DNA from: Oopsacas minuta
Taxonomy: Eukaryota > Animalia > Porifera
Length of the DNA stretch: 64,000 nt
Assembly (NCBI GenBank): GCA_024704765.1
Contig: JAKMXF010000320.1
Coordinates: 124,001 to 188,000, forward strand
Direction: 5' to 3'
Shown: piece after piece, positions 5,893 through 34,017 of the stretch
Layout: every line of letters begins with the position of its first letter
How positions within the stretch are numbered: position 1 is the first letter of the stretch
Notes under the pieces: model-generated
Database searches by the model: none
Told to the model about the DNA's origin: nothing
Seen by the model: only the letters and a program-made list of their open reading frames with translations
Position numbers and translations under genes: made by a program

Positions 5893-7077
5893 TTAAATAG
5901 AAGAAAATTGGTCTAAATATTTGCTAAACAATATAAAAGGTTCTAAAACAGAAATACAGTAGCTGGAGTAATTCGTTCTGTTAAATTTATAATTTTCAGC
6001 GTAGTCGATTGTGTGAATTAATTGTCCTCTCTGATTGTAAATCTTAATTCTCTTCTCCTGGTTGTGGCTAAATAGAATATTTCCTGACAAATCAATGACA
6101 AAACTGAATAAGTCTATTTCAGGACATAACACATTAAACACTCTTAAACAAATACCATCTGTATCAAACACTTGCAATGGATAACCAGCTCCATAGAATA
6201 GCACGTATACTTCTTCTTTACAAATATGTATGTCTCGAATATTTGGACTCTTTTTAATGCGATGCGAAATTCTCAATTCAACTTCTCTCTGCTTCAAGAT
6301 ATTGTTACTATATACACAAAATGATATTATTTTACCAATTAATAAATCGCCTCTCGAAGTTAACGCTAATCCAAAATATTTATCTTCTCCTCCTATCGCT
6401 CCTGACCGGGCAACTATTTCTCCAGTAGTACGACTATATTTTAACAGTTCCGGGTTCATATAGAACCAGTTTTGCTTCAAAACATAAAAGTGTAAGCTGT
6501 CTATACAAATGTAAGTTATTCGTCCCAAATTTTGAAAAGAATTTACAATTTTATTCGTGATTATATCCTTCTCATAGACTGCATTATTGCGAGCGAAAAA
6601 AACAGTTAGAGCTAAGGGATCAGAAGCTATACAGCTGACTGGTGAGTTATGAGACAAATCATTTTCATTTTCCAAATTCAATACCAGTACATCTCTGTAC
6701 ATAGCATACGGATTCATTATACACCTCATCTTACCAACATTAATAATACTGTCTTGCCATTTAACATGTATGTTACTTGGTAATGTGTATTTCTTGATTC
6801 GATACAGATCCCTCTTAAGCGAACGAAAATTCTTCATTAGGAACCCTTGATACTTTTCTAGATACATATCCAGCTCATAATTTAGATATTCTATCACTCC
6901 ACTCGCCTCACTTGCTATAATATCTTCTTCTAACAAAATATAATCAATTTCGACTAGACTCAGTTCTATTAACATATTCACATTATTCTGTAAGCTAGTA
7001 ACGTTAATATAAGAACCCACTAACCGTCTGATAATCTCTTCTTTACAGATTTGTATTTCACTCTTAAACTTGTCCAT
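5893..7077 (-). CDS. Orphan protein with helical N-terminus and C-terminal NHL-like beta-propeller repeats (394 aa, intronless)
   Basis: Open 394-aa ORF. Repeats such as FGLALTSRGDLLI, IRDIHICKEEVYV and FVIDLSGNILFSHNQEKRIKIYNQRGQLIHTI resemble NHL blades. No RING or B-box seen. Confidence 0.55.
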   Translation of the reverse strand: MDKFKSEIQICKEEIIRRLVGSYINVTSLQNNVNMLIELSLVEIDYILLEEDIIASEASGVIEYLNYELDMYLEKYQGFLMKNFRSLKRDLYRIKKYTLPSNIHVKWQDSIINVGKMRCIMNPYAMYRDVLVLNLENENDLSHNSPVSCIASDPLALTVFFARNNAVYEKDIITNKIVNSFQNLGRITYICIDSLHFYVLKQNWFYMNPELLKYSRTTGEIVARSGAIGGEDKYFGLALTSRGDLLIGKIISFCVYSNNILKQREVELRISHRIKKSPNIRDIHICKEEVYVLFYGAGYPLQVFDTDGICLRVFNVLCPEIDLFSFVIDLSGNILFSHNQEKRIKIYNQRGQLIHTIDYAENYKFNRTNYSSYCISVLEPFILFSKYLDQFSSI

Positions 7078-7181
7078 CTTCTAAGTATGATAGTTGGAAA
7101 TTGAAAAATAAGCTTTAGGAAATTCTACCTTACTACAAGTTATCAAATTTATCTTAATAATATGGATAAAGAAATCTTATA

Positions 7182-7343
7182 TGTAGACTCTGCAAAGTTA
7201 ATCGGGTTACTTGGCCAGAACAAAACCATACAAATAGACTTAAAAGACTCCGGTTAGCGGTTAATCGAGCCAACACCCTTATTCAGCTTAACCGGCTCAA
7301 AACGGCCTGGCCCCGATGTGACCCTATTAAGCGGAGTCTACTA
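7182..7343. mobile_element. pogo-type MITE, same family as 16543-16701
   Basis: Shares gtagactc...ttaatcgggttacttggccagaacaaaaccata...gtgaccctattaagcggagtctac with the copy at 16543-16701. Confidence 0.7.
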
Positions 7344-7950: not shown

Positions 7951-8886
7951 TTACTTTGGTCGTTTAAAAACATGCCAGAAATTACAGTATTTTCCTCTGC
8001 TACATCTCTTCCTACTCCATTTAGTAAGATTATTACCATACACAACCTGACAGATAGCTCTATCAAAATCTTCTAAACAGCTATACTCACACTGAACTAG
8101 CCTACGGTTATACCAGCGTGCATTCAGAGCCTCTCTACACTTTACAGCATTTTCTGTTCTCTCAAACAGTACGATAACATTCCCTCTGAGATGTGAGGAA
8201 TAATTAGCACAGACTTCAAACCTCAATACTCTTCCAGACTTGCTAACCTCTAGATAAACATCTTTGTAAAATGCTAAGTAGCACTGATAGAGGTCCCAGT
8301 CATCAATCTCCAATTCTACATCTTGTTCCCTTCCATCTACCATGCTCCCGCTAATTCCTATCTCTGTGAACAAGTGAGGGAACACTAGTGTCCTGGATAC
8401 CCGAGGGTAATAATGGTATTTGTCACATCTATCTCCGAATTGACATGCACCAGTCTTTGAGAAGAAGCTACACAGAGTGTCTGTATCAGGTGCGAAGGGG
8501 AGGTGTGTCATAAAGGGCATAATATGGTTATCTTTAATAAGACTAATGCTGCTCTTGCCCTTATAACTCTCTTTGACTACAGGAATAGAGCTAGTGATTA
8601 TTTCCTTATTAGTTTTCAGTCTGGATATGGTCTCTCTTTCCCTGGCAACCCAAGAAAACTCCTGGAATGTCCTTTCTTCTTCGTTCAATACATCTAGTCT
8701 GTTTTCGAGATGATTTACTGTTTCACTAATCTTAGCTACTTCTAAAGCTAAATTATATCTATTCTTAGCTAGTTGTTGTCTCATAACTCTTCTCTTCTCT
8801 TTCTTGAAAAGTTGTCTCCTCATCTTGTGCGTCATAGAGAGATAATCAATTCCTCTCTCTCTTAGGAGAGATTTTATGTCTGACAT
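7951..8886 (-). CDS. ZRSR2: U2AF35-related splicing factor ZRSR2/Urp (CCCH-UHM-CCCH), intronless, no RS tail
   Basis: Charged helical N-terminus, ZnF1 CSFFSKTGACQFGDRCDKYH, UHM with LRGNV and RWYNRR, ZnF2 ending CSRGKYCNFWHVF. Confidence 0.85.
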   Translation of the reverse strand: MSDIKSLLRERGIDYLSMTHKMRRQLFKKEKRRVMRQQLAKNRYNLALEVAKISETVNHLENRLDVLNEEERTFQEFSWVARERETISRLKTNKEIITSSIPVVKESYKGKSSISLIKDNHIMPFMTHLPFAPDTDTLCSFFSKTGACQFGDRCDKYHYYPRVSRTLVFPHLFTEIGISGSMVDGREQDVELEIDDWDLYQCYLAFYKDVYLEVSKSGRVLRFEVCANYSSHLRGNVIVLFERTENAVKCREALNARWYNRRLVQCEYSCLEDFDRAICQVVYGNNLTKWSRKRCSRGKYCNFWHVFKRPK

Positions 8887-9432
8887 CTCTAAATTACTAT
8901 TCCATTATTTCAGAGTTCCTAGTCGAGAAGACGAGTGTGATGTTGGCTTAGTATTTAACTGAGCACACTTGAAATCAATTGTTAATACACTTCCTGTCAT
9001 CTGATCTTCCCAATTTATTGGTATTATCCGAAACAGCAGACAAGGTTTCATCACATGTGAAAAATATCTGAAAATATAACTTTTTCACAAATCTTATCAT
9101 ACTTTTAGTAAATCAGATGACGGGAAGTTTATCAAATAAAGATTTAAAGATTTAAAGTAGCTCCAAAATGTAATTTTTTTTAAATTGTGGAAAAAAGTTT
9201 TCAAATAAATGTTTACACATAATGAAACCTCAGTGGTTGCTTTCGAATAATACTAAATTTGGGTACCTCGGATGGCAGGAAGTGTGGGAAAAATGGATTT
9301 CAAGTCAATATTCGGTTACAACCTTGAATTTAACCTAATATTATTCCATATTTGAAATCTAAGAAACAACAATTATCCTATTAGTCAACTAGTTATTATA
9401 GAGATATGAGTAATAGTTCTAAGTCAAATAGA

Positions 9433-9939
9433 TTACTTATTGAAGCTCCCCCCGTAGGGACCTGCTCCTCTTCCCATTCCGTGAAATTCCGGTTGGAAAC
9501 CATCACCTCCGACTCCTCCGGGCTTCGGTACATCCCCCCAAGCCCCATCTGTACTATCCTGAGTCTTCCTGTAGGCGTCCCTGTCCTCGTCACGAGGTCC
9601 AGATCCTGAAGGACCAAATCCAGGTTTACCACGGGGTAAAGCTGTCCTGGTGAAGGCAGGCCTCTTGAGGGTAGCGGGTACCACGTCTGAAGGCAGATGG
9701 AGATAATCCCTGAGGTACTGGATACCATCGTTAGTTAGGCGCCAATAGAAATGCTGCCAAGCGAACTTCTCTGTTACGTAACCACGACTCTTGAGAGACT
9801 GTAGAGCCTTGAGGACGTATAGGTTAGGAACCTTAATGTGAGGGTTTTCACTCATAGTACAGTCCTTCTTTGCTACGAGCACACCTTCTGTGAAGAGATA
9901 CTCATAAATCTTCTTGCGATCTTTCTTTGGCATCAACAT
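9433..9939 (-). CDS. RPS10: 40S ribosomal protein S10 (eS10), intronless
   Basis: [26 protein letters not shown]...[19 protein letters not shown]...[25 protein letters not shown]. Confidence 0.97.
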
Positions 9940-9983
9940 CTTAGATAGCTGTATTACTTATTGCTTTAATTAATAAACAAATA

Positions 9984-10940: not shown

Positions 10941-11810
10941 TTAGTTTCCTGAATAAATACCAGACTTAGATACTTTGATATCTTTCTTGGGTCTCTGGTT
11001 AAAAGTAGCAACAGATTCCAGATTTACAAGTAATTCTGTTCCTTCCACTAGCTGACCGAATGCTACATAATTTTTATCCATCCATTTAGCTGTTTGGAAT
11101 GTGATATAAAACTGAGAGCCATTAGTATGTGGACCTTTGTTAGCATATCCTAACACTCCTCTTCTGTCGTGTGGTACAGCAAATGATTCGTCTTCAAACA
11201 CTTCCCCATCAAAAACACATATACTGTTAGTCCCACCACCATCTACAATGTCTCCGCCTTGTATCCATCCTCCTGGTAGCATACGATGCATAGGTGACCC
11301 TACAAAGCTCAGAGTCACGTCTCCCTTCTTCCCAGCTGCTCCTGTACAGAGCTGGAGGAAATTTTTACTTGATTTAGGACAGAGCCGTGTATCTAACTCA
11401 AACACAAGTTTCCCTAGAGTAGCTCCCTCACTAGCCAGTTCTAAATAAACAAATTTCTTACTGACGTCACTCAAATATTTGAGATAACTTTCTCTAGCTT
11501 CTGATTCATAACTCTTAACTTCTCTATCAAATGTGTGATTGAATTTCTCCTGAGCCCAGGTAAACAGCTGAGAGTGACCGCCTAAAAACTGTCCATTGAG
11601 TAGCACTACACACGAATCTTTGAAACTCCAAGCTTCTTCTCTCCACTCCCGCTTCTCTTGCTGGACGTAAGCATTCCAGCTGAACTCAAATTCTCCAAGA
11701 GTTGACACTTCCGTCACGCGACCAGCTGATTTCAGTTGATTGCTGAGTTCTGTACAGTAGTGGTACTCGCTGCTGCTGAGTAGACCTCTCACGTAAAGAT
11801 GATGTGACAT
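10941..11810 (-). CDS. PPIL6: Cyclophilin-like PPIase with N-terminal extension (PPIL6 type), intronless
   Basis: C-terminal cyclophilin domain (CPKSSKNF, HRMLPGGWIQGGD, FEDESF, ANKGPHTNGSQFYIT, WMDKNYVAFGQ) plus the roughly 115-aa N-terminal domain typical of PPIL6. Confidence 0.85.
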   Translation of the reverse strand: MSHHLYVRGLLSSSEYHYCTELSNQLKSAGRVTEVSTLGEFEFSWNAYVQQEKREWREEAWSFKDSCVVLLNGQFLGGHSQLFTWAQEKFNHTFDREVKSYESEARESYLKYLSDVSKKFVYLELASEGATLGKLVFELDTRLCPKSSKNFLQLCTGAAGKKGDVTLSFVGSPMHRMLPGGWIQGGDIVDGGGTNSICVFDGEVFEDESFAVPHDRRGVLGYANKGPHTNGSQFYITFQTAKWMDKNYVAFGQLVEGTELLVNLESVATFNQRPKKDIKVSKSGIYSGN

Positions 11811-12489: not shown

Positions 12490-13554
12490 CTATCCAATTG
12501 TTATTCCCACTCCTAATTTGATTTGATTGCTCTTCTGATTGAGGCTAGTTGAGAGAGCAAGAGAAACAGGGAGAGGCTGTAGACGCTTCTCTACGATAGA
12601 ACTGACAGTCCATTGACTGTTTATGCTAGAATATATCTTAAAATCTACTTTAGGGATATGCCATGAGTATCCCATTGTCACAACACCTGAGTCATCAAAT
12701 GGAGTTTTTTCATACTCTCCTACTAGATTGATGTTCTCTGTCACTTTCCGCAGATACCCCAGACTCCAAGAACCAAAGCTAAGTTTAGCAAATGTTTGCC
12801 ATCCAGGCTGCTTGTAACCAACGAATCCTGAAATACCAGCTCCTTGCTGAGAAGACTCTTTCTGGTAAGTGAATTCTACTCCTAGCGATAAGTTCTGAGT
12901 AACTCTCTGTAGATACTGCAGGGCTAGCACCCCGGATGCAGGGTACAAGCAGGGGTTGACTAGGGTAGAGCAGAAGGAGAAGTCTGTTCCCATATATTCA
13001 GCCATAAGCTGTACTACTGAGAATTCAGATTTCTGAGTTTGTATGTCAGAACGTAGTTTCAGTGCTTTGTTTGGTTTGTGTACACATATTGCCTTAAGAT
13101 TAGTAGCATTATCCATCTCTCCGTAGAACATCGGGTACAGCTCCATTTCTCCATACTTCTTACGACCAACATAGGATATGCCATAGGAATAGAGGCTAGC
13201 TTTGCTAGACGAGTGAAGACTATGTATTGCTTGAAAATACTGACTGAGAGGGGTATTGAGAGTTAGCTTAGCGCCTTCTATTAGATTAGGCAAATAGGTC
13301 TTGAATTCTTGATTAATACTCTCAATCGTGTCTGAGAATGCATCAACTGCTCCCTCTCCTTTCTCCCCGTGAACACCAGGGGGGTGGGAACCAAACGTGG
13401 GGAATACAGGAGAATCCTCTGGTAGATGTACAGGTCCTGATGTAGGAAGAGAGTTAGTCTCATTAGGTTTAGGGGGGGTGAGGGGAATAAGAGGATCAGT
13501 GGGAGGTGAAGCAGGAGAAACAGGAGGTGGGAGAGTATCTTTAGTATTACCCAT
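12490..13554 (-). CDS. TOMM40: Mitochondrial outer-membrane translocase channel Tom40, intronless
   Basis: Pro-rich N-terminus and porin-3 beta-barrel ending LGVGITIG. First ATG is at 13554 (the ORF track starts at a TTG, 13557). Confidence 0.9.
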   Translation of the reverse strand: MGNTKDTLPPPVSPASPPTDPLIPLTPPKPNETNSLPTSGPVHLPEDSPVFPTFGSHPPGVHGEKGEGAVDAFSDTIESINQEFKTYLPNLIEGAKLTLNTPLSQYFQAIHSLHSSSKASLYSYGISYVGRKKYGEMELYPMFYGEMDNATNLKAICVHKPNKALKLRSDIQTQKSEFSVVQLMAEYMGTDFSFCSTLVNPCLYPASGVLALQYLQRVTQNLSLGVEFTYQKESSQQGAGISGFVGYKQPGWQTFAKLSFGSWSLGYLRKVTENINLVGEYEKTPFDDSGVVTMGYSWHIPKVDFKIYSSINSQWTVSSIVEKRLQPLPVSLALSTSLNQKSNQIKLGVGITIG

Positions 13555-13963: not shown

Positions 13964-16315
13964 TCAGGTATCTGCGGATTGTTCAGCTAAGTATTTTTCA
14001 TATTTCTTGCGCTGAGTTTCAAATGCCTTTTGCAATATCTTTCTCGCTTTACCTATAATCTCTTCACCATCTTTATCATGAGTTGGAATTCCATTCTCAT
14101 CAAAAGCAGAATATTTATCAATTTCTTCTGCGGATTTGAAAATCTCATCTGGAGGAATTTTCCGTAGAGCTTCAGCTCTCAGCTGTTTATCTTTCATAAT
14201 TTGTTTCTGTATCTCTTTCTCCTGAGCTCTGTCTTTCTGCTGTTTTACCTTCTCTTCTCTCTCCGCTATTATATCCTCCTTCTTCCTCAGCTTTACTAAA
14301 TAAGGGTTCTGAGATGTCTCCGGCTTATCCTCTAACTGTATACCTACCTCTACCAACTGCTCATCTCTCAAACTATCACACAGAGACAGAATCTCAGTAT
14401 TCTTACTAACACGAGCTTGTTTACGTACTTCATGTCTGAATTTAGCAGTTAACAAAGCTATCGGCATTACTCTATCTTCCTCGGTATTGTAATCAGCTCC
14501 AGTAGACATGAAGCTATGCTGAGTACTAGCTACAACTCCTAGTATCTGATACAATCTGTACAGATAAGTCCCTGTCTTGAGTAAGAGAGGACTGTCTATT
14601 GGATGATGTGCTTTATCTGCTTCTGATACATATACATTGACAAGTGAAATTAGTTCTCTTAATAGCTTCATAGCTAATCCTGTATTAACAGAATCACATA
14701 GAGCTCTGTGTATCTGTGTCTGAGTATTAGATAAAGCTGAATTTAATTCTAATTCTGTTTTACTCCACTTAACACCACTACAACCTCCCAGCTGTTGTAG
14801 TCTAGCCTTCAAAGAGAGAAAAAAGTTCTTAACTGCAGCTTCGTATACCTCTGCTTCCTCAAGAGCTCGGGAGCTGTAGTCCAGCACAGAGTCCCACGCG
14901 TGGAGTAGGAAGAATATTCTCAGCTGAGAGGCGGTGTGTTTCTGGAGAGCTTCTCTAATAGTTATAAAGTTCTTTAAAGATTTAGCCATCTTACATCCGT
15001 GTATTGTGAGATGTCCAGTGTGTAGGAAGTAATTAATCCATTGTTTCGAATCATAGTAAGCTTCAGTTTGAGCAATCTCGTTATCATGGTGAGGGAACTT
15101 CAGATCCACTCCCCCTGAATGGATATCCAGCTGACCTCCAAATATCTCAGTAGCCATAGCTGAACACTCAATGTGCCATCCAGGTCTCCCTTGCCCCCAT
15201 GGAGATGGCCATGAGGGCTCTCCAGGTTTGCTAGCCTTCCAAAGGACAAAGTCCTGACTAGCTCTCTTCTCCTCACTGGACGTTAGCTCACCTTCTCCCT
15301 CCTGTAGTTGATCTAAATTCATAGCTGCTTCTGGAACCAGTTTAGCATACTGGTGTATTTCTGTAGAATTGAAATGATTAGTAGTGAAGTATACAGATCC
15401 TCTGGACTCGTATGCATAATTCTTATCTACCAGCACTTGAATGAAGGATACAATCTCTGGAACATACTCACTCACACGTGTCAGTACATCAGGAGGTAGA
15501 ACTCCCAGATCTCTCATGTCTCTGTGGAATTCTTCTTCATAATGACTACTCAGTTGTTGGAATATACTTTGGTTTGTAATAGAAGCTCCGAACTTCTTGT
15601 CTAGATGTTCAGAGAGAGCGTACTCAGCTGTTCTAGCTAATCTCTCTAGATCAGCTGTACTGCAATCAGCTGATTTTACAAGATGCTGTGTTTCTAATAT
15701 AGTCTGCTCCAGAGCTGATAACATCTTCTTTAGCATAGATTTCTTATCTTTATCCTTCTCAGTGTTATGTTTCTCTTGTAACATCAGTAGAGAATATTGT
15801 AAGTCATCTCTGAATTCTAACTTCGTACTAATGCCTAGATTAGATACATACTGCTGGAAGAGATATCTGCTACGACCTCTCTTGATAATCTTATCATCTA
15901 TATCAGTTATGTTCATGACGTATAGTATGTTATATCCGAAGTATTCGGTCAGAACACGTCTAAGAATGTCTAGAGAGAGGTAGGTACGTGCATGTCCCAT
16001 ATGTGATGAATCGTATACTGTAGGACCGCAGCTGTACCAAGTGACTAGGTTAGAATTAATAGGAACAAAGAGATCTTTCCTACGTGTAATGGAATTATTG
16101 AGATGTAGTCTGTCTCTGAGGTTGAGGTCTTCTGAGGGACTTTGCCATACAGGTTTTTGTGGAGATGAATTAGTTTTAAGATTGCTGTTATTCTCACTCA
16201 TTCTGCGTATAAATGCGAGAGATTGCACAGTATAAGGACTCTGTAATGAAGTATAAGCTACTGCAAGATGGGTTTGTGTTAGCTGTGTAAATCGGAGAAT
16301 ATTCATTACTAGCAT
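13964..16315 (-). CDS. CARS1: Cysteinyl-tRNA synthetase, eukaryotic cytosolic type, intronless, with 38-aa N-terminal extension
   Basis: WYSCGPTVYDSSHMGHAR (HIGH), MNITDIDDKII, GRPGWHIECSAM, FPHHDNEIAQ, KMAKS (KMSKS variant), eukaryote-type insertion and C-terminal extension. Confidence 0.95.
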   Translation of the reverse strand: MLVMNILRFTQLTQTHLAVAYTSLQSPYTVQSLAFIRRMSENNSNLKTNSSPQKPVWQSPSEDLNLRDRLHLNNSITRRKDLFVPINSNLVTWYSCGPTVYDSSHMGHARTYLSLDILRRVLTEYFGYNILYVMNITDIDDKIIKRGRSRYLFQQYVSNLGISTKLEFRDDLQYSLLMLQEKHNTEKDKDKKSMLKKMLSALEQTILETQHLVKSADCSTADLERLARTAEYALSEHLDKKFGASITNQSIFQQLSSHYEEEFHRDMRDLGVLPPDVLTRVSEYVPEIVSFIQVLVDKNYAYESRGSVYFTTNHFNSTEIHQYAKLVPEAAMNLDQLQEGEGELTSSEEKRASQDFVLWKASKPGEPSWPSPWGQGRPGWHIECSAMATEIFGGQLDIHSGGVDLKFPHHDNEIAQTEAYYDSKQWINYFLHTGHLTIHGCKMAKSLKNFITIREALQKHTASQLRIFFLLHAWDSVLDYSSRALEEAEVYEAAVKNFFLSLKARLQQLGGCSGVKWSKTELELNSALSNTQTQIHRALCDSVNTGLAMKLLRELISLVNVYVSEADKAHHPIDSPLLLKTGTYLYRLYQILGVVASTQHSFMSTGADYNTEEDRVMPIALLTAKFRHEVRKQARVSKNTEILSLCDSLRDEQLVEVGIQLEDKPETSQNPYLVKLRKKEDIIAEREEKVKQQKDRAQEKEIQKQIMKDKQLRAEALRKIPPDEIFKSAEEIDKYSAFDENGIPTHDKDGEEIIGKARKILQKAFETQRKKYEKYLAEQSADT

Positions 16316-16364
16316 TTATGAATTGATCAGGAAAGTTTGGAATCGTTCATAGAGTTTATAATTA

Positions 16365-19117: not shown

Positions 19118-19714
19118 TTATATAACTCGCCTCACTTCAAAAAATCTCTTGAGATAGTAAATCTGTCCAATAGTTACCAGAAATAGAATTAGAGCTTCGA
19201 AGAAGGACCACCATACAACTCTTGAGTTAGTGTTATCATTAATCATTCGATGTATCCTCTCTCTTACTTCCATATATTCCTGTTCATGTTTTACAACTGT
19301 TAATCCTTTAGACAACTCTTGTATCATAGCTTCTAGACCAGTGCTGCCCCCTTCTAGATCAGAGCTGGTCGGTTCCATCATGTCTACACTAAACTTTAAA
19401 ACTTTAGGTGTCATTGTTGACATTTTGTTAGAGAAGCAGTATTTATAAGTTCCATCGTTAGCAGCTGCGAATGTATACTTCCCATTAGACTCCCTCACTC
19501 CTGTGTGGATAGGTCGCTCTTCTGGATCGAATATAAGAACATCTATATCGTAAAACCCACCTTCCACTACCTCAAATGTTATTCCTATCTTGGTGTGAGC
19601 CTTCACTGTATCGAAAAAGCATTCCTCAGCGTGTGCATCGATTTCAATGAAATAGGAATAGGAATTTCTCAAAAGTGAGAGCAGTATAAGAGAGCAAAAG
19701 ATTCGCAATTTCAT
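19118..19714 (-). CDS. TMED2: p24 beta cargo receptor (emp24/gp25L/GOLD), intronless
   Basis: Signal peptide, [55 protein letters not shown]. Confidence 0.95.
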
Positions 19715-22370: not shown

Positions 22371-23315
22371 TTATTCATTTATCATATTTGATTTTAAAAA
22401 GAATAATTTAGTGACTTGAACCAAACCTCTGCTACAGAATCTCAGAAATATTAAAAAGTAACTGATACAGCAAGCCATTACTCCGAGAACAGCATATAAC
22501 AATATTGATGCTGAAGAGAACTTGAAAAAGAAAGAATCACAGAACTGAGAGCAATAATTGCAGGAGAAATCTGGTGTTGAGAAGATGAACAATAAAGTGT
22601 GAGATAACAAGAGTAGTGTGTAGAGAGGAAGAAATACGAGAATTTCAAATAAATATAGCTTGTCTAAAAACCAAAATAACTGATCTTGAATGCAAAATGT
22701 ATTCTGTTCACTTATTTCGTTGTTCTTGCATAACTTCATCCAGGCATTCCACAGCTTTACTGCTAAGTAAAACACTCCAATACAATGCATGAAGAGAACT
22801 GTTATAGGAATAAAATTCGTAATATGTCCTACCTTATAAGGGCAAGTGTGAAAGTTGATAGATGCAATAACAATGTTCGCTATATGAAAGATGAAGAGAA
22901 ACACTTTGAAAATAGTAATCGCAGAAGTGTAATAAAATGTAGCACCTAGGGAAGAAATACCCTGCTCCAGATGACGATGTTCCTCAACTGCAAGAAGGAT
23001 AGTAGACGAGTTTAACAGAGATTCTGAAGGGGTGTGCGATCTATGGGAAGCACTCTCCTGTACATTGGAGGGGTAAGGAGGAGGGAAGATCAGTTCATGA
23101 GTTTGTTCAATGCTACTGCAACTGTGGTGCGTGTTTATAGGTGCTGTTGTGTGTGATGAAACAGTCCCATCAGTCTCAATTCTGAGGGGTAAATGAGATT
23201 CAGATGTTGAGGGTGATACACTAGAGTGTCCAATAGATTGGTAATCATGAGAGTAAAGAGGTGTTGAATGGATTCTAGTGAATTCACCTGAATAAGTGGG
23301 CGGTGGAGAATTCAT
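22371..23315 (-). CDS. Four-TM membrane protein with S/T/P-rich PPxY-bearing N-terminus, TMEM272-like; nested in the ENDOV intron on the same strand
   Basis: 314-aa ORF with PPTY and PPPY motifs, four hydrophobic segments, and loop motifs FHTCP...FIPITV and NYCSQFC...FFKF resembling TMEM272. Confidence 0.55.
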   Translation of the reverse strand: MNSPPPTYSGEFTRIHSTPLYSHDYQSIGHSSVSPSTSESHLPLRIETDGTVSSHTTAPINTHHSCSSIEQTHELIFPPPYPSNVQESASHRSHTPSESLLNSSTILLAVEEHRHLEQGISSLGATFYYTSAITIFKVFLFIFHIANIVIASINFHTCPYKVGHITNFIPITVLFMHCIGVFYLAVKLWNAWMKLCKNNEISEQNTFCIQDQLFWFLDKLYLFEILVFLPLYTLLLLSHTLLFIFSTPDFSCNYCSQFCDSFFFKFSSASILLYAVLGVMACCISYFLIFLRFCSRGLVQVTKLFFLKSNMINE

Positions 23316-24040: not shown

Positions 24041-25717
24041 TTTATCCTTTATATCGATCACTTGTCTTAAAGGCTGACTTATCTATATCAGTCAAATTTG
24101 ATAGATTTGGGGCCTTATTCACTAAACTACTTAAACTTAAGTATTGCTAAAACTAGGTATTTAAGGCCCCTGATGTAAACCTTGTTCCAGGAAATTCTAG
24201 ACTGTGAACAGGCTATAATTTCGTAGGCTGTGCACATGCACTCAAGTATTCAGTTATTAGTAAAACAATTTGGCGCGTATATTTTCTAGCGCGCCACCAC
24301 TGCAACAGAGCTGTGATGATGGAGTAATTAAATCTGTTTAATCATTCTAACGTATCTCATCACATGCTCAAATTAAAATAGAATTAAAATATTTATAGAT
24401 TTCACTCAGCAAAAACGCCTTATTAAGATAACAGAAATGAAGCAAATATGTATAAATTGAGCTACACATCTAGAGTAGACACTAAATTATATATTCATCA
24501 CATAATTCTATAGTTGTTTGTTGAAAAGAAGGTTATTAGAAAACTTATAAATAAATAAATTTATACTTGATAGTCACAACAATTAATATTTTCTATATAA
24601 TTATGGGGGAGCTGTATTTGTTCAAATTAGCATATTGTCATTTGTTCAAAATTCTAAGGTTGTCATTTGTTCGACTTATATTTTCCTATACTTTCCTATG
24701 TTTTTCTATGTTATCAAGACATCTCAATGATTACCTGTCTATAATCCTAATTAAAAAAATATTCCCCTCATACTTCCATAATTATTAAACCCACGAACGA
24801 GCGTAGCTAGTATTGGAGTGAAGCGGAAATGTGCGCGATTGGCGCGATGAGCTGTCACAAGTTTTAAAACTAAAATGTACATACAAAGTAGAAGTAATGT
24901 ATGCGCCTAACCAGTACGTAACTATGAAAATACTAGAACTTGCCTAACGCTATCAATGAGAGATAGGACTAATATCTACTGTTAAAGATGACAAAATAAA
25001 TATATAAGAAAATATCAGTCGAACAAATGACAAGATGCTAATTCGAACATGTGAAGCGCTAATAATTATTTGCTCTGACATGGTATTCTCCTATAATGTT
25101 AAAGGCGCGTAAATAGGAAGACTCAATTATTAGATGAGTGAGAACAGTCCAACAAGAGCGGATTATTTCAAAATTTGGAATGGAATATTTGTAACGAGGT
25201 AAATAACTATATGTACAATCATTGTATGGTTAAATAATCATCAAATGGCTTCATAATTATTGATTAATGAATATGTACATACTACACCAGAGAGGGATGC
25301 AAGATTTTGGTAAGGGGGCGGGTAAAATTTTCAAGCGGCTTTGGAAAGAATTGGAAGATCATGTGTACTCATTGCTATACGATGCTGTACACACTCCCAG
25401 GAAAGTTTCGTAAACCTGTGTTCTTGAAAACCTTTCTGACATCTCTTGCGTTTGATGGAGTAGCTAGTGCTATTTTAATATAACATTAAGCTAACAAGTA
25501 ACAACTATGATCAAAATGTTCGACAAGTACGCATTAAGCAGAGATTGTCTACGTGTGATAAAGTACTTTGTGCGTATAGGTGTAAATAATATAATTATTC
25601 AATAAAATTCTTAGAGACAATTAAACTTTATACTGGAGTGGAGGGGGGCCCTGCCCCCTGCTCCTGGACCCCTCCTATACACATTATATGTATTCTGATA
25701 AAAATAATATAATTAGA

Positions 25718-27610
25718 ATGGATTTCCTGACGGTGAGTATACTGTTACTACTTCTCCTGGCCCTTTGTGTTATCGTGCACTTTGTCAGCAAGAAGATACC
25801 CATACTCAAAGTACTCAGAGTTTATACTATCAAAGTAAACACAGGAAGACCTGGTTTAAACCATGGGGGCTCCTTGGTGGCCAAAGTACTGAAGGAACAC
25901 CACATAGAACACGTGTACACTCTGTGTGGTGGTCACATCTCTCCTATACTGGTAGCTTGTGAAGAAGAAGCTATAAGAGTTATAGACACGCGAAATGAGG
26001 CTAGCTGTGTGTTTGCAGCTGATGCAGAAGCCCGTATAACCGGAAATGTAGGGGTTGCTATTGTGACGGCAGGACCAGGAGCTACCAACACAATAACAGC
26101 TGTTAAGAATGCACAGATGGCGCAGACTCCTCTACTGGTGCTCTCTGGAGCAGCAGCATTGCTGTTTGAGGGACGAGGCAGTCTACAAGACATTGATCAG
26201 ATGTCTCTCTTCAAACCTCTGTGCAAATACACTGCTAGAATTCCAAGAGTAAACGAAATAGTCCCAATACTCCGTAAAGCGATTCAACAGGCTATGTCAG
26301 ATACTCCAGGCCCCGTGTTTGTTGAGTTCCCAATAGACACGATATATCCTTATGAATTGCTCCTGGAAGAAACACTGCCAAAACAACCAGCAAGGAATAC
26401 AAAGGAAAAACTAATAGAATTCATAATTAAGGTAAATATAGGAGACATATTCACAGGAGCTTTCACGGAGCAGGAGTATGGCCCTCTCCCCATATCTTTT
26501 CCTAGACATACACGAGCTCAATGTGACACAAGTATCAAACTATTCCAGAACTCAAAGAAACCAATTATTGTTATATCAAGTCAAGCAATGTTACACTCTG
26601 TGAAGCCTATAAATTTATGCTCAGCCCTGGAGCTGATGGGAGTACCCTGCTATCTGTCTGGCATGACCAGAGGGTTACTTGGTGAGGACAATGACATCCT
26701 GCTGAGACACAAAAGAAGAGAGGCGTTAAAAGAAGCAGACTTGATAGTATTAGTTGGTGCGGTATGTGACTTTAGATTAGAGTACGGTAAGGCTCTCTCA
26801 GGGAAATCTAAGAAGATTATTGTAAACAGAAACAGAGAAGACTTGCAACGTAACACTGACGTCATGTGGAATCCTGACCTATCTATCCTAGGAGACCCAG
26901 CTCTGTTTATAGAGAGTCTGAGTCAGGAGCTGCACAGGATTGGATACAAGGTGTCTAAGGATTGGTTAATGCACCTGAAGGAGAGGGACGATCTGAGAGA
27001 GACTGAAAATATCAACAAGAGTAGAGATCCTGTTAACAAGTATATAAACCCAATGAGTCTCTTGTTCCAGGTAAGAGAGACTATGGATAAGAACAGCATT
27101 ATTGTAGTGGATGGAGGAGACTTTGTTGGAACTGCTTCCTACATACTCAAGCCGAATGGTCCCTCTACCTGGCTAGACCCAGGTCCCTTTGGGACCCTTG
27201 GAGTAGGAGGAGGGTTTGGTCTAGGCGCCAAACTCTGTAAACCAGACTCAGAAGTTTGGATAATCTACGGAGACGGATCTCTAGGGTATAGTATTGCGGA
27301 ATTTGACACCTTCATGCGACACAAAACACCTGTAATTGCAGTGGTAGGGAACGATGCGTGCTGGTCCCAGATCCAGAGAGCTCAGGTTAAGATATTCAAA
27401 TCAGAGGTAGCTTGTAATCTGAGCTTCTCTAGCTACGAGTTGGTAGCAGAAGGTTACGGAGGCGTGGGATTCCAGATGCAGAACAATGACCCAGCTGAGA
27501 TAAGAATGTTGCTACTCAAAGCCAAAGAGATTGCTAAAACAGGCAAGCCAGTACTTCTTAACTTTCTAATCGGGAAAAGTAACTTCAGGGAGGGCTCTCT
27601 CTCAGTTTGA
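25718..27610 (+). CDS. ILVBL: Acetolactate synthase-like / 2-hydroxyacyl-CoA lyase 2 (TPP enzyme with N-terminal membrane anchor), intronless, nested antisense in the ENDOV intron
   Basis: TM anchor, TLCGGHISPIL, RNEASCVFAADA, VTAGPG, GSLQDIDQ, WLDPGPFGTLGVGGGF, TPP motif GDGSLGY...VGND. ATG 25718 is preferred over 25688. Confidence 0.93.
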   Translation: MDFLTVSILLLLLLALCVIVHFVSKKIPILKVLRVYTIKVNTGRPGLNHGGSLVAKVLKEHHIEHVYTLCGGHISPILVACEEEAIRVIDTRNEASCVFAADAEARITGNVGVAIVTAGPGATNTITAVKNAQMAQTPLLVLSGAAALLFEGRGSLQDIDQMSLFKPLCKYTARIPRVNEIVPILRKAIQQAMSDTPGPVFVEFPIDTIYPYELLLEETLPKQPARNTKEKLIEFIIKVNIGDIFTGAFTEQEYGPLPISFPRHTRAQCDTSIKLFQNSKKPIIVISSQAMLHSVKPINLCSALELMGVPCYLSGMTRGLLGEDNDILLRHKRREALKEADLIVLVGAVCDFRLEYGKALSGKSKKIIVNRNREDLQRNTDVMWNPDLSILGDPALFIESLSQELHRIGYKVSKDWLMHLKERDDLRETENINKSRDPVNKYINPMSLLFQVRETMDKNSIIVVDGGDFVGTASYILKPNGPSTWLDPGPFGTLGVGGGFGLGAKLCKPDSEVWIIYGDGSLGYSIAEFDTFMRHKTPVIAVVGNDACWSQIQRAQVKIFKSEVACNLSFSSYELVAEGYGGVGFQMQNNDPAEIRMLLLKAKEIAKTGKPVLLNFLIGKSNFREGSLSV

Positions 27611-28903
27611 TTAATGTCTGTTTGTTAGATTACAGTGTAATAGTTATTAATATATAGTACTGTTGCTTGAGAAATTTCCTCTTAAAATGAGGAATATTTT
27701 TGCACCCTGGATACTGAAGTGTTGAGCTTTAGTAAAATCATGCAATGACAAGGTGGGGGCGCCAAACGCAAACATACTCCCACCTTGAACTTTATGCACA
27801 ATTCTGATTACTTACAAGTATTTCCTAAATAAGCAGGTCATTTTACGACATTGACCTGGCAGCATGTAGGGTCCTAATATGACAATACTGTAATACTGCT
27901 TTGAATATCAGAGATACAGCGGATCTACTTTTTTTAGGACACTAAATTTTCTAAACTTATTCCAATTAAAGAAGAACAGTGAAATGTCTAGGAATTTTTC
28001 AGTTACTGGAGTAAGAATCCAGAAGTCCTTAATACGAGAATTATTAGTTATACCTTTATGATGGAGATTAGATGGCCCAGCCTAGGCTATAAACCTTTTA
28101 GAATCAATGATTCAGCTTGAATGTAGGCAAATCTTGGGTAATGAGCAAGGTTGAAACCGCTCGAACCGAATACTAATTTGTCATACCAGTGAACCTTCGT
28201 CATATTTTGCTACATATTTACAAAGATTTGGACCTAAAATGATCACACCATCCAAAAAACTTATTAAAGTAGTATAAAGCTCCCTGCTGAGCTGAAATCA
28301 ATTTTCACAGACTAATTATTCTTCCTGCTGCTCGGATAACCGATTTTTTAATTATCGGATATTTTTGTGCTCGAAAAGAGTCTATAAATTGTAGAGCTAT
28401 CAAAGGTATGGTAGCAAATCTGAAATATATTATAGAATTTATGAGTAATGTGCTTGATAAAACAGCTATTTTGAGCCGCTTAAAGGTTTATAATCATGTC
28501 TATAACCAATAGAAAATTAATAAGAATACAAGAGGCGCCCGAAGAGTGCGACACGGGGACACAAAGTGTTAACGGACGGTGCAGCGCAAGTGAGCGAAGC
28601 TTGCTTATATGTCTAATTATTGAAAGACGTATTAAACAACTCAGATTGAAATAAATAAAATACTCTTCGTTTAGTGGTCACTTGAATGTATTTGGGAATA
28701 TTCAGCTTCATAGCAACGCAACTATATCCTAAGAATGTGGCTAATAAATTGCATGATAAGCCATTTTAAATCCGTCAGGAGAGTGGCAGTAATCAATAAG
28801 AGAGATAGTTTTCAATATCACTATGAATACTGAAGGAGAGTAATTAGATTCTCAATAAATATATCTAGATTCATAGATTATGGTATGTATGATGTAAAAT
28901 TAC

Positions 28904-29383
28904 CTGATGCAGTAGCTTGAGTGAAGGAAACTCTAAGATTACTAGCATAGCACAAGCATTCACTTCGTCTCCCTTAATGAATGAGATATCCACCCCCCCG
29001 ACTAATTTGAGATTTCCAAATGGATTCAATCCTTTTTTCCATGCTAACACTCCTGGACAATCCTCTACACTTAGTTTCTGTTTCAATTCTAACTGTTCTT
29101 CCGCCCATAAAGCCTTGTATCTGTCTAGTTCAGGATGACTGTTGCGATGGACGACCCAGGTATTAGCCACACTGTTCTCTTCAGGTGCGTCACTCCTGTT
29201 TCCTTTTATAGCTAAAGATGTTAAGCCCTGTACTAGCTCATTCACGCCGGGTTGATCTTTCTGGGGCTCAGTTGCTTTTGACGGTGAGTCGTGATCAGAG
29301 CCATTATCAGAATCATGATCTGAGTAACTCTGGTAGTGAAGATCATCATCATCTGAGTCTATATGTGGATATCTAGCTGCCAT
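28904..29383 (-). CDS. ENDOV: Endonuclease V, exon 1 of 2
   Basis: Acidic N-terminus, WAEEQLELKQKL, VGGVDISF, ACAMLVILEFPSLKLLHQ, then donor CAG|gtaatt at 28904/28903. The phase-0 join to exon 2 gives a 369-aa protein collinear with human ENDOV (FPELEVVYEESRMVSLTAPY). Confidence 0.92.
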
Positions 29384-30304
29384 TACTAGTTTATAAACAT
29401 GTACATATTATTCTGTCAATTTCTACCACTAGTTTATATCTAATTTTATCACCTGTAAAATTTCTACTTATATCATTATGAGTATAAATCACTAACGTAC
29501 TATTATTAATGGTTCAAACAATGATATACTCAGCTACAGGGGGTAGCCAGCTCCGCAAACTGACTCACACCAATGGAGCGCCAGCTGCAAGTAGCCCACG
29601 CCAATCAATTCTACTCCAAACGCCTTGTCTAATATATTATAAATCAAGGCTGCTTAAAACGACAGTACGCAATCTTAGTCCAGGTGAAATCGGGTTATTT
29701 TGTCCATTTGATTACAATGTAAAAACGACAAAATAACCAGATAGACAACAAACCACATTATGCTAAATACTGATAGACAAGATTATTTTGATAGCAAATT
29801 TGATAGCTAATATACACCAATTAACAATACACAAGTCTACATATTATTAGCTATTAATTATGCCATGTACTAATCCATTATTTTGAAAATTCACTAAAAT
29901 ATATTAGGAAAAAATAAGTCGAACAGATTTTCAATTGTTTACACCCTCAGATAGAGAAAAATACTCGATAATAATAGAAATATAATATTTGACAAAAAAC
30001 AACCGATCTGAAAATGACCCGATTTCAACTGTACATATACGTATTCGTTCTAAGGTGGTCCAAAAAAATCTGAAATTTGTGAAGTAATGTCAAGCGTCTT
30101 ACTGCTACTAAATTTCAAAAAAAATCGGAAGTCATTTAGGGGTCCGCAATTCAATTCAAGTTATCTATGGGAACTGCCTGCAACCTGCAAATCCACCCAC
30201 GCAAAACCAGGCCAAACGACCGGGTGGGATTGAGTCTGTCTACGCTCCTGCTCAGCTCTATCAGGCAAAGTATACTCGCAACATAATGAATATAGCATTT
30301 GAGT

Positions 30305-30909: not shown

Positions 30910-31512
30910 ATGTTTCCTACACAACTAGTATTCTATGAATCAAATTGCACATCAATAGATTTTTGGATATTTCCTGTGAATGCAGGCAGTTTAATTATGT
31001 TATTTTGTATCAAAGCTATACTGAATTCACAAACTATATATTTTATTATACGCAATGAGGTGTACACTTGTGTACCGGTCCTATCTATTAACCGTTCCTT
31101 ATAAGTTATAAATTGACTCTTCTTGACTTTATTGGATGGTTAGTCCTTTGTAATTCAAGATTTGAATTAATGTATATCATGAAGAAGGAAAACAGTTTAT
31201 ATGTTCTAAATATATTCAGTCATATTCAGATTAATTCTAAATTACATCTTCTCAAACATATCTGTCTATAGATTAATTATTGGATTTAATTCTCATCTTA
31301 TGGTCTTCTCATAACATAAAAGCATATCCAATGCTAAAACTAAGAATATTGTATTATTTAAACACACACCATTGTTTCTTTTAAAATTAAATATTAAACA
31401 ATAATGCAAACCATGACAATCTATGTTGTGACATATTTGTTTAACCCGTCTTTTACTGTTAGATGGAGAATAGTTATAAAATGTATTACTCAAAGAAAGT
31501 ATAACTTTCGTT

Positions 31513-34017
31513 TTAGTTTAGATAAATTTTAATTTTCCAGTTCTCCAATAACTGGATGAGACTGCGTTTCTTAAATCGCGCGGCCCAATCTAAGGCCTCT
31601 TGGACTAAAACCTTCCTTTGTTCCACCTCAGGCAAACGTTCTAATATTTTAAACAAATTGTCATAATTCTTTCCTGATTTTCTGATCTCGACACGAATAT
31701 CCTCTTTAGCCAAACTAATTTGTTTCAATTTAATTACGTCAAAATTAAGACTCTCACTGACCATTGTCTCAGTTTTTTGCCGCTTCGGATGAGTGGTAGG
31801 GAATGGAGCTGGATTTGAGCGTTTCGTATTGAAGTGGTTGGCAGGTAGATTCTTAGAATCGGATAATATACAAGACGGTTCATCTCTGCTGTTTAATGGT
31901 TCTTCCGTATCGCTTGAGTTGAGTAAATTGTTCTGTGAGTAAGATAAGTCACTCGCTGGGTGATTAGAAGCTAATCTATGGGGGTTGTCTCTGTATCCGC
32001 TCTCTAATGAGGGGGAGGGAGATATGTCTGAATAACTAGTCTGAGAATATTTTAAAGACGAATAATTAGAATTTAAATCGTTAGATGGAGTTTGCCTCTT
32101 TTCTATCCAACTAAGTTGCTTTTCAAATTGAGAGAGAGGAGGAGGAGTCATAGAGCGAGGAGGAGTGTTGGGAGAAGGAGGTCTAATCTTGTGTTTAGAC
32201 TTAATGCGCTTGTCTGTAGGAGCTTTAAATCCGTATCTATCTTCGATATCTTCATCAGCTTCATCCAGTATTGAATTCTTTGCAGAAATATCTACCAGTT
32301 TATATGGGTTAGCAAATAGTTGTGTGCGTGACATACAAATATCGATTTCTCTCAGAGGAGGTACTCTACTGAGATATTCTTGGTAGTTACCCATCTGAGA
32401 GATTGGTATGGAGTAGTCACGTATGGATAGCCGTGTCGAGGAGTGAGGAGATGTGAGTATGTCACGATATTTCCTAAGTTTGTCAAGACACGTGTGTCTC
32501 AGTCCGTATACACTACCCCTCTTAGCAACAGGCTTGTTATGACTACTAACTTCAACCTCCCTAAGAGGAATAGAGGTATACACACGTTTGCTTTCTGATT
32601 CAGATTGTCGTTTTATCTTCTTAAGATATGCAATGATGTTGTAACTAGGGTTACCATCATAAGAATTGGGAATTAGAAGAGAGTTAGCACCAAACAGTCT
32701 AAGAGAGTTCTTCAGAGGTTGTATATAGTAAGTAGGAATAGAATTCAGATATTTGTTAAACTCTTGTGTCCATTGAGAAGAAGGACGAAAATTCTGTTTA
32801 CTCAGTTCATCTAACAACGGGATGATAATCGGATAGTCATAAGGCATTACGAATATGTTCACATGCTTCCCACCACTACTAGCCCTGAGATACCCGAAAG
32901 CACGTGCAGTTCCCTCCTTGAATCCGCTATTCATTACGTAGCACTGCCAAGAGGAATTGTGAGTATTCTTACGGCTTAGTATGTATTGAGTCAGTGGAGA
33001 TGGTTCAAGTTCGTATTTGTCAAACGGGAAATTCTCAATTAGAAGAGGATGAGATTCCTTCGTATCGAAATAGATCGTTGGATGAGCACTCCTTGGCGGC
33101 AACTGGTTGCTATTCGCATCAGGCCAGAACTCTTCAGGGATAGGCCAGTGCCCATTGAACTGTCCAGTTTTGGGGTTAGCCTTCACATACATCAACTTAC
33201 GTCCGCAAGAAATGTTGGAGATATTGGTAGTCTCAGAAAGACTAGAATCAGAACTTCTGTTGTCAGAGCGACTACTGTTCCGGACAGGATCTCTCATACA
33301 CTCAAAGTTTACCACAACCCCCGTCTGTAACTTGGTAGAGATAGACTCGAGAGAGTGCGTTAGAGATTTGGGTGAGATTGCTACGTAAGATTTACCTCCA
33401 GTTGCCTCACACATAGAGTTTATCTCTTGCTGAGCATCGAGATGAGAGAATTGAGTAGGAGTAAGAGAGTGTGCTGGTGTGACACCAGGGACTCGAAGGA
33501 TTATAGAAAACAATCGCTGATCCCATCTAAACGGTTCCTTAGTTAGTTCCGCTCCCTCATACCCACTGTTGGGTAGGTTTAGAAGAGATTCTACCCCAGA
33601 CAAATTAGTGAATGATCCGCCATCTGATAGCAATATTATACAAGCAGGTTCAATATAAAACGGATTCCTACCCATACCATAATTATCTGTAGCAGATTGT
33701 AGTCTCGGAATATTCAAATAATCAAAACATTCTCTTAATGAATTTCCTAAAGTAGAAATAGCATTTCCTTTAAGATTCTTGAGTTCAGCTGAAAACGTAG
33801 CATGGCTCTCCTTCCATCCAGATTTTATGCAGTAAGGTCGTTCATCAAAGTTTACAAGAATATATCTGTCGTGACGCCCCGAGCTATCTCTGTTTCTGAT
33901 TTTTATAAAACTTTCCACCGCATTTTTTGCTATATCCAACAAGGAAGTGCCGAGATAGGATACCTGGTTCATGGATGAACTGCTATCAACCAGAAAAACG
34001 ATCACTTGTACAACCAT
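31513..34017 (-). CDS. INTS6: Integrator complex subunit 6, intronless (834 aa)
   Basis: VWA domain (VFLVDSSSSMNQ, EPFRWDQRLFSIILR), GHWPIPEEFWPD, PFDKYELEPSPLTQYIL, ISQMGNYQEYL, C-terminal AARFKKRSL. Confidence 0.95.
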   Translation of the reverse strand: MVVQVIVFLVDSSSSMNQVSYLGTSLLDIAKNAVESFIKIRNRDSSGRHDRYILVNFDERPYCIKSGWKESHATFSAELKNLKGNAISTLGNSLRECFDYLNIPRLQSATDNYGMGRNPFYIEPACIILLSDGGSFTNLSGVESLLNLPNSGYEGAELTKEPFRWDQRLFSIILRVPGVTPAHSLTPTQFSHLDAQQEINSMCEATGGKSYVAISPKSLTHSLESISTKLQTGVVVNFECMRDPVRNSSRSDNRSSDSSLSETTNISNISCGRKLMYVKANPKTGQFNGHWPIPEEFWPDANSNQLPPRSAHPTIYFDTKESHPLLIENFPFDKYELEPSPLTQYILSRKNTHNSSWQCYVMNSGFKEGTARAFGYLRASSGGKHVNIFVMPYDYPIIIPLLDELSKQNFRPSSQWTQEFNKYLNSIPTYYIQPLKNSLRLFGANSLLIPNSYDGNPSYNIIAYLKKIKRQSESESKRVYTSIPLREVEVSSHNKPVAKRGSVYGLRHTCLDKLRKYRDILTSPHSSTRLSIRDYSIPISQMGNYQEYLSRVPPLREIDICMSRTQLFANPYKLVDISAKNSILDEADEDIEDRYGFKAPTDKRIKSKHKIRPPSPNTPPRSMTPPPLSQFEKQLSWIEKRQTPSNDLNSNYSSLKYSQTSYSDISPSPSLESGYRDNPHRLASNHPASDLSYSQNNLLNSSDTEEPLNSRDEPSCILSDSKNLPANHFNTKRSNPAPFPTTHPKRQKTETMVSESLNFDVIKLKQISLAKEDIRVEIRKSGKNYDNLFKILERLPEVEQRKVLVQEALDWAARFKKRSLIQLLENWKIKIYLN

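Follow-up and report, generated by a model that had tools for sequence, protein, structure and literature searches.

Start codons that closely follow an acceptor-like AG raise the question of whether a genome carries the imprint of trans-splicing with a spliced leader (SL) and, if the genes concerned also follow each other on one strand, whether they are transcribed together. Both questions arise for contig C320:124001-188000 of the glass sponge Oopsacas minuta, a stretch of 64,000 nucleotides that we refer to as the window. A sequence-only reading had proposed that most start codons between 5.9 and 34 kb of the window follow an AG by 0 to 3 nt, that these AGs accept a spliced leader, and that TMED2-CARS-TOMM40-PPIL6-RPS10-ZRSR2 may form an operon. 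All start contexts quoted there are indeed present in the DNA. Pfam backs the gene names of that reading except for two ORFs without any match there ('NHL' and 'TMEM272-like'); the exons of EndoV were matched to Pfam one at a time, and the identity of PPIL6 is backed by named homologues (Table 1). The O. minuta assembly comprises 365 contigs and 61.46 Mb with a GC content of 36%, and three proteins deposited for O. minuta (KAI6649525, KAI6649531 and KAI6649564) are identical to neighbouring ORFs. A search for the Ras family yielded 155 matches.

Table 1. Genes, transposon and candidate acceptors in the window (distances are from the start codon).
Feature	Positions	Strand	Remarks
'NHL' gene, 394-aa ORF	5893..7077	-	identical to deposited O. 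minuta protein; no Pfam match
Candidate acceptors, ATG 7077	7078..7083	-	TAG 7081-7083, 3 nt; AAG 7078-7080, abutting
ZRSR2-like zf-CCCH gene	7951..8886	-	Pfam; start matches deposited protein
Candidate acceptors, ATG 8886	8887..8899	-	GAG, 0 nt; TAG 8889-8891, 2 nt; TAG 8897-8899, 10 nt
RPS10 (eS10)	9433..9939	-	Pfam; without introns
Candidate acceptors, ATG 9939 (RPS10)	9940..9951	-	AAG 9940-9942, abutting; CAG 9949-9951, 9 nt
PPIL6 (cyclophilin-like 6)	10941..11810	-	only AAG 11820-11822, 9 nt
TOMM40	12490..13554	-	nearest AG is AAG, 10 nt; TAG 13578-13580, 23 nt
CARS ORF	13964..16315	-	Pfam
Tigger/pogo transposon	16748..18414	-	Pfam DDE_1 and HTH_Tnp_Tc5; ORF in two pieces
TMED2 (p24 family)	19118..19714	-	TAG 19722-19724, 7 nt
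EndoV, downstream exon	21374..22003	-	cis acceptor tcattttcAG at its entry
'TMEM272-like' 314-aa ORF	22371..23315	-	within EndoV intron; no Pfam match
ILVBL-like TPP enzyme	25688..27610	+	sole gene on the plus strand; within EndoV intron
EndoV, first exon, ATG 29383	28871..29388	-	TAG 29386-29388, 2 nt
INTS6, ATG 34017	31513..34038	-	TAG 34036-34038, 18 nt

Acceptor-like sites at start codons

An AG in front of an ATG is a common sight at 36% GC, and the pattern might therefore be functionless and reflect chance together with the selection of suitable ATGs by the reader. This explanation has some evidence on its side: across all ATGs, an AG turns up within 3 nt in 24% and within 10 nt in 51%, and a crude set of all 55 large ORFs exhibits no excess (25% within 3 nt as compared to 24% in the control, and 58% within 10 nt). 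Moreover, the starts of CARS (Met39), ILVBL (Met11) and the Tigger transposon were the reader's own picks among several ATGs. We have therefore defined an objective set of starts, i.e. ORFs of at least 150 aa for which the translation from the first ATG is identical to a protein deposited for O. minuta; 258 kb contain 17 of them. Here, an AG is located within 3 nt of the ATG in 7 of 17 cases versus a fraction of 0.20-0.24 among control ATGs (p 0.04-0.08), and the strict form of the claim thus barely beats chance. The looser form fares differently: a YAG is present within 22 nt upstream of 15 of the 17 annotated starts versus 0.47-0.50 in the controls (p about 5e-4 to 1e-3), and for TAG alone the corresponding values are 13/17 and 0.32. 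If the YAG has to follow at least 60% pyrimidines and to lie within 25 nt, 11/17 starts qualify versus 0.23 (p 3e-4). Thus, a pyrimidine tract followed by YAG, the 3' splice-site signal that an SL acceptor should carry, occurs in front of these starts above the expectation from composition. Among the genes annotated outside the original observation, a YAG is found within 16 nt in ten out of ten cases. This is difficult to reconcile with chance and selection, and we regard that explanation as unlikely.

Two trivial sources of the signal were considered. The nearest YAG is in frame with the start in just five out of 15 cases, indicating that the signal is not an effect of stop codons, and G is not favoured at position -1 (0.16), indicating that it is not an effect of the start context either. 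Several individual genes illustrate the pattern: The TAG at 7081-7083 is preceded by the pyrimidine-rich tract cttatttttcaatttccaactatcatactt, and a conserved ATGGA motif precedes the TAG at 8897-8899 of the ZRSR2-like gene. The same arrangement is seen at RPS21 and RPL38 elsewhere in the O. minuta genome, and in RPL38 a branch-point-like TACTAAC is located 5 nt 5' of CAG-T-ATG. On the other hand, PPIL6, TOMM40 and the ORF at 22371-23315 of O. minuta fit the SL reading poorly, as they have no convincing YAG nearby: for PPIL6, there is none within 88 nt of the start, and the ORF at 22371-23315 has an AAG 1 nt 5' of its ATG with no YAG in the vicinity.

Orthologous starts and the choice of start codon

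The comparison with three other glass-sponge assemblies (L002, L003 and L004) also argues against chance. In these relatives, a YAG is found within 12 nt of 12/17 starts versus 0.36 (p 0.0035), in a sample that is as small as the one from O. minuta (n=17 each), and this enrichment is seen even though the upstream sequences have diverged to the point of being unalignable. At the level of single genes, the position and identity of the site vary. The orthologues of the ORF at 5893..7077 have a TAG at 4 nt in L002 and an AAG at 8 nt in L003, and the AAG/ATG junction of RPS10 is shared by L002 and L004, whereas L003 lacks it. The PPIL6 orthologues have a TAG or CAG 1-4 nt from the start, and no leader-encoded N-terminal extension was found among transcript-derived PPIL6 relatives. 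For TOMM40, the nearest AG is 31-32 nt away in the orthologues; with a nearby YAG absent from every species compared, this gene is a poor example of an acceptor. The RPS10 contigs of Vazella, including those from Logan, are genomic. The Logan contig L011 covers 172 nt upstream and carries a tandem 23-mer.

Three of the starts deserve separate consideration. (i) The proposed acceptor at Met39 of CARS (ATG 16201) is a weak example, since its CAG-A is coding sequence and provides the Arg codon AGA in a conserved N-terminal extension. The N-terminus that is conserved in the relatives starts at ATG 16306, just after the TAG at 16309-16311, and a search of 40 nt at the first ATG (16315) revealed no AG. 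(ii) Similarly, no AG was found within 40 nt of the first ATG of ILVBL (25688), and it is the second in-frame ATG (25718) that has a TAG, at 25714-25716, in front of it. (iii) The tAG-a-ATG of the Tigger transposon (ATG 18291), a recent insertion carrying the same motif as the host genes and in this respect in line with chance, is intrinsic to the element, as judged from four further genomic copies that are 99% identical, and is a poor example of a host acceptor. If the acceptors are used, the annotation of start codons in O. minuta should take the first ATG after the acceptor; in this case CARS would start at 16306 rather than at 16315, and ILVBL at 25718 rather than at 25688.

Donors, promoters and the spliced leader

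A further possibility is that the YAGs terminate ordinary introns in the 5' UTRs, or that genes whose leaders are very short use the T-rich tract with TAG as an initiator or core-promoter element. A strong donor, AGG/GTAAGT, is indeed located 341 nt upstream of RPS10, and CCG/GTGAGT is found 520 nt upstream of PPIL6; the acceptors of these two genes could therefore belong to cis-spliced 5'-UTR introns. In addition, RPL38 has an intron right at its start codon (ATG/GTAAGT), and introns adjacent to the start codon are frequent in ribosomal protein genes. Upstream ATGs within 60 nt of the starts occur at about half the expected frequency, which any short 5' UTR would explain equally well and which is based on small numbers. 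However, a consensus donor (GTRAGT or GTAAGN) is absent from four of the six spacers in O. minuta and from all six in L003, although the small number of cis introns observed here do use GTAAGT. Since most spacers are without a consensus donor, the candidate acceptors appear to be unpaired, although weak donors may be present. As for a promoter motif, the cross-species alignments of the spacers contain no conserved upstream block. We therefore hold cis introns or a promoter element to be an unlikely explanation for the sites. The reading as SL acceptors provides the best fit, with acceptor-like YAGs that are enriched in O. minuta and in the orthologues and mostly lack consensus donors, although Tigger, Met39 of CARS and TOMM40 were poor examples, and most likely the YAG sites in front of the starts are the genomic footprint of SL trans-splicing.

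SL trans-splicing in hexactinellids, mentioned in the sequence-only reading, is borne out by the literature. PMC7986045 cites Douris 2010 for it, and in PMC4824033 Heterochone is listed after the same work. In Aphrocallistes vastus, a leader of about 37 bp has been observed in long cDNA reads (PMC10282587). Only 4% of the long reads carry this leader (PMC10282587), and trans-splicing may thus reach fewer mRNAs than the sequence signal suggests. A text search for Oopsacas and a spliced leader in one paper returned only the A. vastus paper, and sponges are unmentioned in Bitar 2013. The mechanism has thus already been published for glass sponges, and the window is just another local example. The likeness to the SL systems of Heterochone and A. 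vastus is close: the animals belong to the same class, with a compact genome and an acceptor, predicted in O. minuta, immediately upstream of the ATG that appears to have no paired donor. They differ in that the leader of about 37 bp is known from A. vastus, whereas the O. minuta case is known from genomic sequence alone.

We lean towards the view that the locus is a compact run of separately promoted housekeeping genes, the predicted unpaired acceptors of which take the glass-sponge spliced leader in trans. The signal itself was observed, along with its enrichment, its return in the orthologues and the scarcity of donors; that the cells make use of it, in trans and with a given AG at each gene, is our inference. 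In most genes, the acceptor would be the T-rich tract with TAG, or less often CAG, about 20 nt or less upstream of the ATG. Joining of the leader at such a site would discard the outron together with stray upstream ATGs such as those at 16315 (CARS) and 25688 (ILVBL), and would leave a very short genome-encoded 5' UTR. Each gene would most likely have its own promoter in the spacer of 0.4-1 kb rather than being part of one polycistron. If the acceptors are used, the promoters would be located further upstream than the 5' ends of the mRNAs imply.

The gene for the SL RNA was looked for as well. A blind pattern of promoter element, donor and Sm site gave 21 matches versus 22 in the control, a comparison of low power without a leader sequence; a single repeated family among these matches turned out to be a transposon. 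Local scans revealed no candidate. Genes for U2 (three), U1 and U5 snRNAs were located, and their promoter element near -60, similar to TCAAACCA, is weak and too degenerate for scanning. Contig look-ups with the exact products of RPS10 and TMED2 gave no match, and cluster look-ups with the proteins of the window returned the NCBI genome record alone.

Gene spacing and the operon question

The co-orientation of the genes is real but only mildly unusual. With 12 ORFs in a row, the minus-strand run in the window is the longest in 258 kb; with 19 strand switches among 55 ORFs, such clustering is mildly significant only (p=0.04). It is tempting to see in TMED2-CARS-TOMM40-PPIL6-RPS10-ZRSR2, possibly followed by the 394-aa ORF, one polycistron that is resolved by SL trans-splicing as in nematodes and tunicates. 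Most of the genes are preceded by acceptor-like sites, and gene order and strand are maintained in the three other glass-sponge assemblies. Certain spacers in L003 have just 173-301 nt, and the spacer between CARS and TOMM40 lacks AATAAA as well as ATTAAA both in O. minuta, where it measures 409 nt, and in L003, where it has 221 nt.

The spacers nevertheless speak against an operon. Typical intercistronic spacers in nematode operons have about 100 nt. Short spacers that leave no room for a promoter were not found in O. minuta, where they measure 409, 679, 1001, 546, 873 and 2811 nt. Across the species, the same spacers span 173 to 4194 nt as a result of transposon insertions, and they have acquired Tigger (between TMED2 and CARS), FLYWCH genes and, in opposite orientation, a MULE transposase. 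Moreover, the conservation of order and strand does not exceed the background synteny: the collinearity runs on beyond the run into a NAT gene and a RhoGEF gene, and since the latter is encoded on the opposite strand, we regard it as general collinearity. The operon proposed for these genes is thus unsupported, and a polycistron across the run seems very unlikely. Equally improbable in our view is co-transcription of one or more neighbouring pairs with resolution by the SL, for which CARS-TOMM40 is the best candidate; if true, sponges would thereby gain their first documented operon. Only a demonstration of polycistronic transcription would add something new for Porifera, and nothing in the window suggests it.

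In the SL1/SL2 operons of C. elegans as in the locus, housekeeping genes of unrelated function point in one direction and have acceptors, predicted ones in the case of O. minuta, near the ATG. The C. elegans operons, however, have spacers of about 0.1 kb, whereas those of O. minuta have 0.4-2.8 kb and tolerate transposon insertions. A second leader class and polycistronic RNA are known from C. elegans, while neither is evidenced in the O. minuta sequence examined. We favour the model provided by the operon-free SL systems of Hydra, rotifers, copepods and ctenophores, in which many genes, each transcribed independently, receive the leader. Hexactinellids, for which operons are unreported, have been grouped with these operon-free trans-splicers (PMC7986045).

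Acceptor-like signals upstream of start codons

Start codons of O. minuta are preceded, within about 20 nt, by a real acceptor-like signal. The sequence-only reading had placed an AG 0-3 nt before most starts, and every upstream string it cited is indeed found in the sequence. This distance, however, turned out to be too strict and in part a product of choice, and the tightness of the pattern was overstated. In a crude set consisting of the first ATG of each ORF (150 aa or longer, no overlaps) on the contig up to 258 kb (n=55, transposon ORFs and internal exons included), AG lies within 3 nt in 25% and within 10 nt in 58% of the cases, no excess over all ATGs of this 36% GC sequence (24% and 51%, respectively). 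The clean set, chosen blind to the AGs, comprises 17 genes (seven in the run at 5893-34017 and ten outside) whose first-ATG translation is the deposited O. minuta protein. Here, the wider signal stands: TAG or CAG (YAG) within 22 nt is clearly enriched, and all ten genes outside the run have YAG at most 16 nt upstream.

Signals at the 17 annotated starts of the clean set
Signal	Annotated starts	Control ATGs	p
AG within 3 nt	7/17	0.20-0.24	0.04-0.08
TAG or CAG within 22 nt	15/17	0.47-0.50	5e-4 to 1e-3
TAG within 22 nt	13/17	0.32	about 2e-4
YAG after at least 60% pyrimidines, within 25 nt	11/17	0.23	3e-4

Two other sources of the signal were rejected: an upstream stop-codon effect, since the nearest YAG is in frame with the ATG in only 5 of 15 cases, and a Kozak-type effect, since starts lie in an A-rich context and only 16% of the 55 ORF starts have G at -1.

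Loci of other glass sponges were located by RPS10 (proteins 84-89% identical) on large ENA contigs: L001 and L002 from ERZ25069837, L003 from ERZ25072730, and L004, encoding RPS10 of Vazella pourtalesii, from ERZ26869290. Upstream sequence (160 nt per start) is essentially unalignable across species. Of the 17 orthologous starts, 12 have YAG no more than 12 nt away, as compared to 0.36 of all ATGs in the same loci (p=0.0035); for AG within 3 nt, significance is once more not reached at these starts. AAG|ATG of RPS10 is retained in three of four genomes, TAGTA-ATG of CARS is common to O. minuta and L003, and TAG is retained 6-10 nt ahead of the ZRSR2 start, where it follows a conserved ATGGA motif. 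For TOMM40, the closest YAG is 23, 32 and 31 nt away in three species, so that splicing of this gene either takes place further upstream or is absent. The ATGGA(N)TAG motif of ZRSR2, common to three species (8897-8907, minus strand), can also be read as a two-codon mini-ORF, ATG GAA TAG in O. minuta and ATG GAG TAG in L002.

Trans-splicing versus cis-splicing

Trans-splicing of a spliced leader (SL) is already known for the class of glass sponges: as the sequence-only reading had stated, it occurs in hexactinellids according to PMC7986045 (after Douris 2010), which gives operons as unreported there; Heterochone sp. is entered as an SL trans-splicing organism in PMC4824033 (from Douris 2010), and in Aphrocallistes vastus a leader of about 37 bp is present on 4% of long cDNA reads (PMC10282587). 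The latter paper was the only result of a literature search for Oopsacas together with spliced leader. The acceptor pattern is most likely the genomic footprint of this mechanism.

Consensus donors (GTRAGT or GTAAGN) occur in the stop-to-ATG spacers at about the random rate. Since they are missing in four of six O. minuta and in six of six L003 spacers, and since the few cis introns encountered use GTAAGT (RPL38), most acceptors appear to be unpaired. The exceptions are RPS10 and PPIL6, with AGG|GTAAGT 341 nt and CCG|GTGAGT 520 nt upstream, respectively; either gene could have an ordinary 5'-UTR intron there. Elsewhere in the genome, RPS21 and RPL38 have the same acceptor architecture, the latter with a TACTAAC branch-point-like motif 5 nt ahead of CAG-T-ATG.

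A blind genome search for the SL RNA gene without the leader sequence (U1/U2/U5-derived promoter element, donor and Sm site) performed no better than the control. For the genes of the window, the sequence collections covered yielded no RNA contig. Three U2 snRNA genes were found, all on a single contig (C111:108375-260857). About 60 nt upstream, U1, U2 and U5 have a weak TCAAACCA-like element in common, which is a candidate for the proximal sequence element of snRNA genes.

Gene content and the operon question

The assembly comprises 61.46 Mb in 365 contigs, and the window corresponds to C320:124001-188000. Nine deposited proteins (KAI6649525, KAI6649531, KAI6649564 and six more) are exact translations of ORFs on this contig. 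Pfam confirmed most of the gene names given previously; the 'NHL' and 'TMEM272-like' ORFs had no match even at E=5.

Features in and next to the run
Feature	Position	Strand	Basis
P-element/THAP9-type transposase ORF	2835-4535	-	
'NHL' ORF	5893-7077		no Pfam match at E=5
ZRSR2-like zf-CCCH gene	7951-8886	-	Pfam
RPS10	9433-9939	-	Pfam
Cyclophilin	10941-11810	-	Pfam; PPIL6 best named homologues
TOMM40	12490-13554	-	Pfam
CARS	13964-16315	-	Pfam
Tigger/pogo transposase, two ORF pieces	16748-18414	-	Pfam
TMED2	19118-19714	-	Pfam
Endonuclease V, two exons	21374-21994, 28871-29383	-	Pfam
'TMEM272-like' ORF, 314 aa	22371-23315	-	no Pfam match at E=5
ILVBL-like TPP enzyme	25688-27610	+	Pfam
INTS6	31513-34017	-	Pfam

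The proposal that TMED2-CARS-TOMM40-PPIL6-RPS10-ZRSR2 form an operon found no support, and a single polycistronic transcript of all these genes seems very unlikely. Operon-like hints are limited to two, a CARS-TOMM40 spacer without AATAAA or ATTAAA and some L003 spacers of just 173-301 nt. Against this, the O. minuta spacers measure 2811 nt between TMED2 and CARS (containing Tigger) and then 409, 679, 1001, 546 and 873 nt, and those of the relatives vary from 173 to 4194 nt and have taken in an opposite-strand MULE transposase and, in addition, FLYWCH genes. Gene order and strand are identical in the relatives, but collinearity extends beyond the cluster to include a NAT gene and, on the opposite strand, a RhoGEF gene, so that the conserved order is background synteny. 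Moreover, strand clustering is modest (19 switches across 55 ORFs, p=0.04). The MULE/FLYWCH-type insertions occupy differing spacers and leave the gene order undisturbed (L002:4336-5763, L003:7946-9439).

Endonuclease V is interrupted by a single intron of about 6.9 kb that contains the same-strand 314-aa ORF and the opposite-strand ILVBL. Its exons were profile-searched as separate pieces: exon 1 covers positions 17-58 of the Pfam profile, which exon 2 resumes at position 58. Exon 1 ends in a non-consensus donor, apparently CAG|GTAATT. Just beyond the run lies the P-element/THAP9-type ORF; its domains are TNP-like RNase H and GTP-binding insertion.

Individual start codons

Two of the proposed acceptors are weak examples. 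The tAG-a-ATG of Tigger (16700-18450, minus strand) is transposon sequence, since four further copies with 99% identity are present (C307, C222, C305, C140), and illustrates the false-positive rate of the pattern; given this identity, the element was active recently. The AG before Met39 of CARS belongs to an Arg codon (AGA) within an N-terminal extension that is protein-conserved in the relatives. The better candidate is TAG 16309-16311, before ATG 16306, which coincides with the beginning of the conserved N-terminus (MNILRF / MSILLF); AG is absent from the 40 nt ahead of the first ATG (16315). Similarly, ILVBL has TAG 25714-25716 between its first (25688) and second ATG (25718).

Two other glass sponges share, at the protein level, the CARS extension of about 35 residues (MNILRFTQLTQTHLAVAY...; 16201-16315, minus strand), after which comes a second Met. 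The extension resembles a presequence and would yield mitochondrial and cytosolic isoforms. Finally, the Logan contig L011 (SRR2064712) encodes an RPS10 with 67% identity and opens, upstream of this gene, with four tandem copies of a ACGATTCTTACAGGATTTTCCAT-like 23-mer (L011:1-100).
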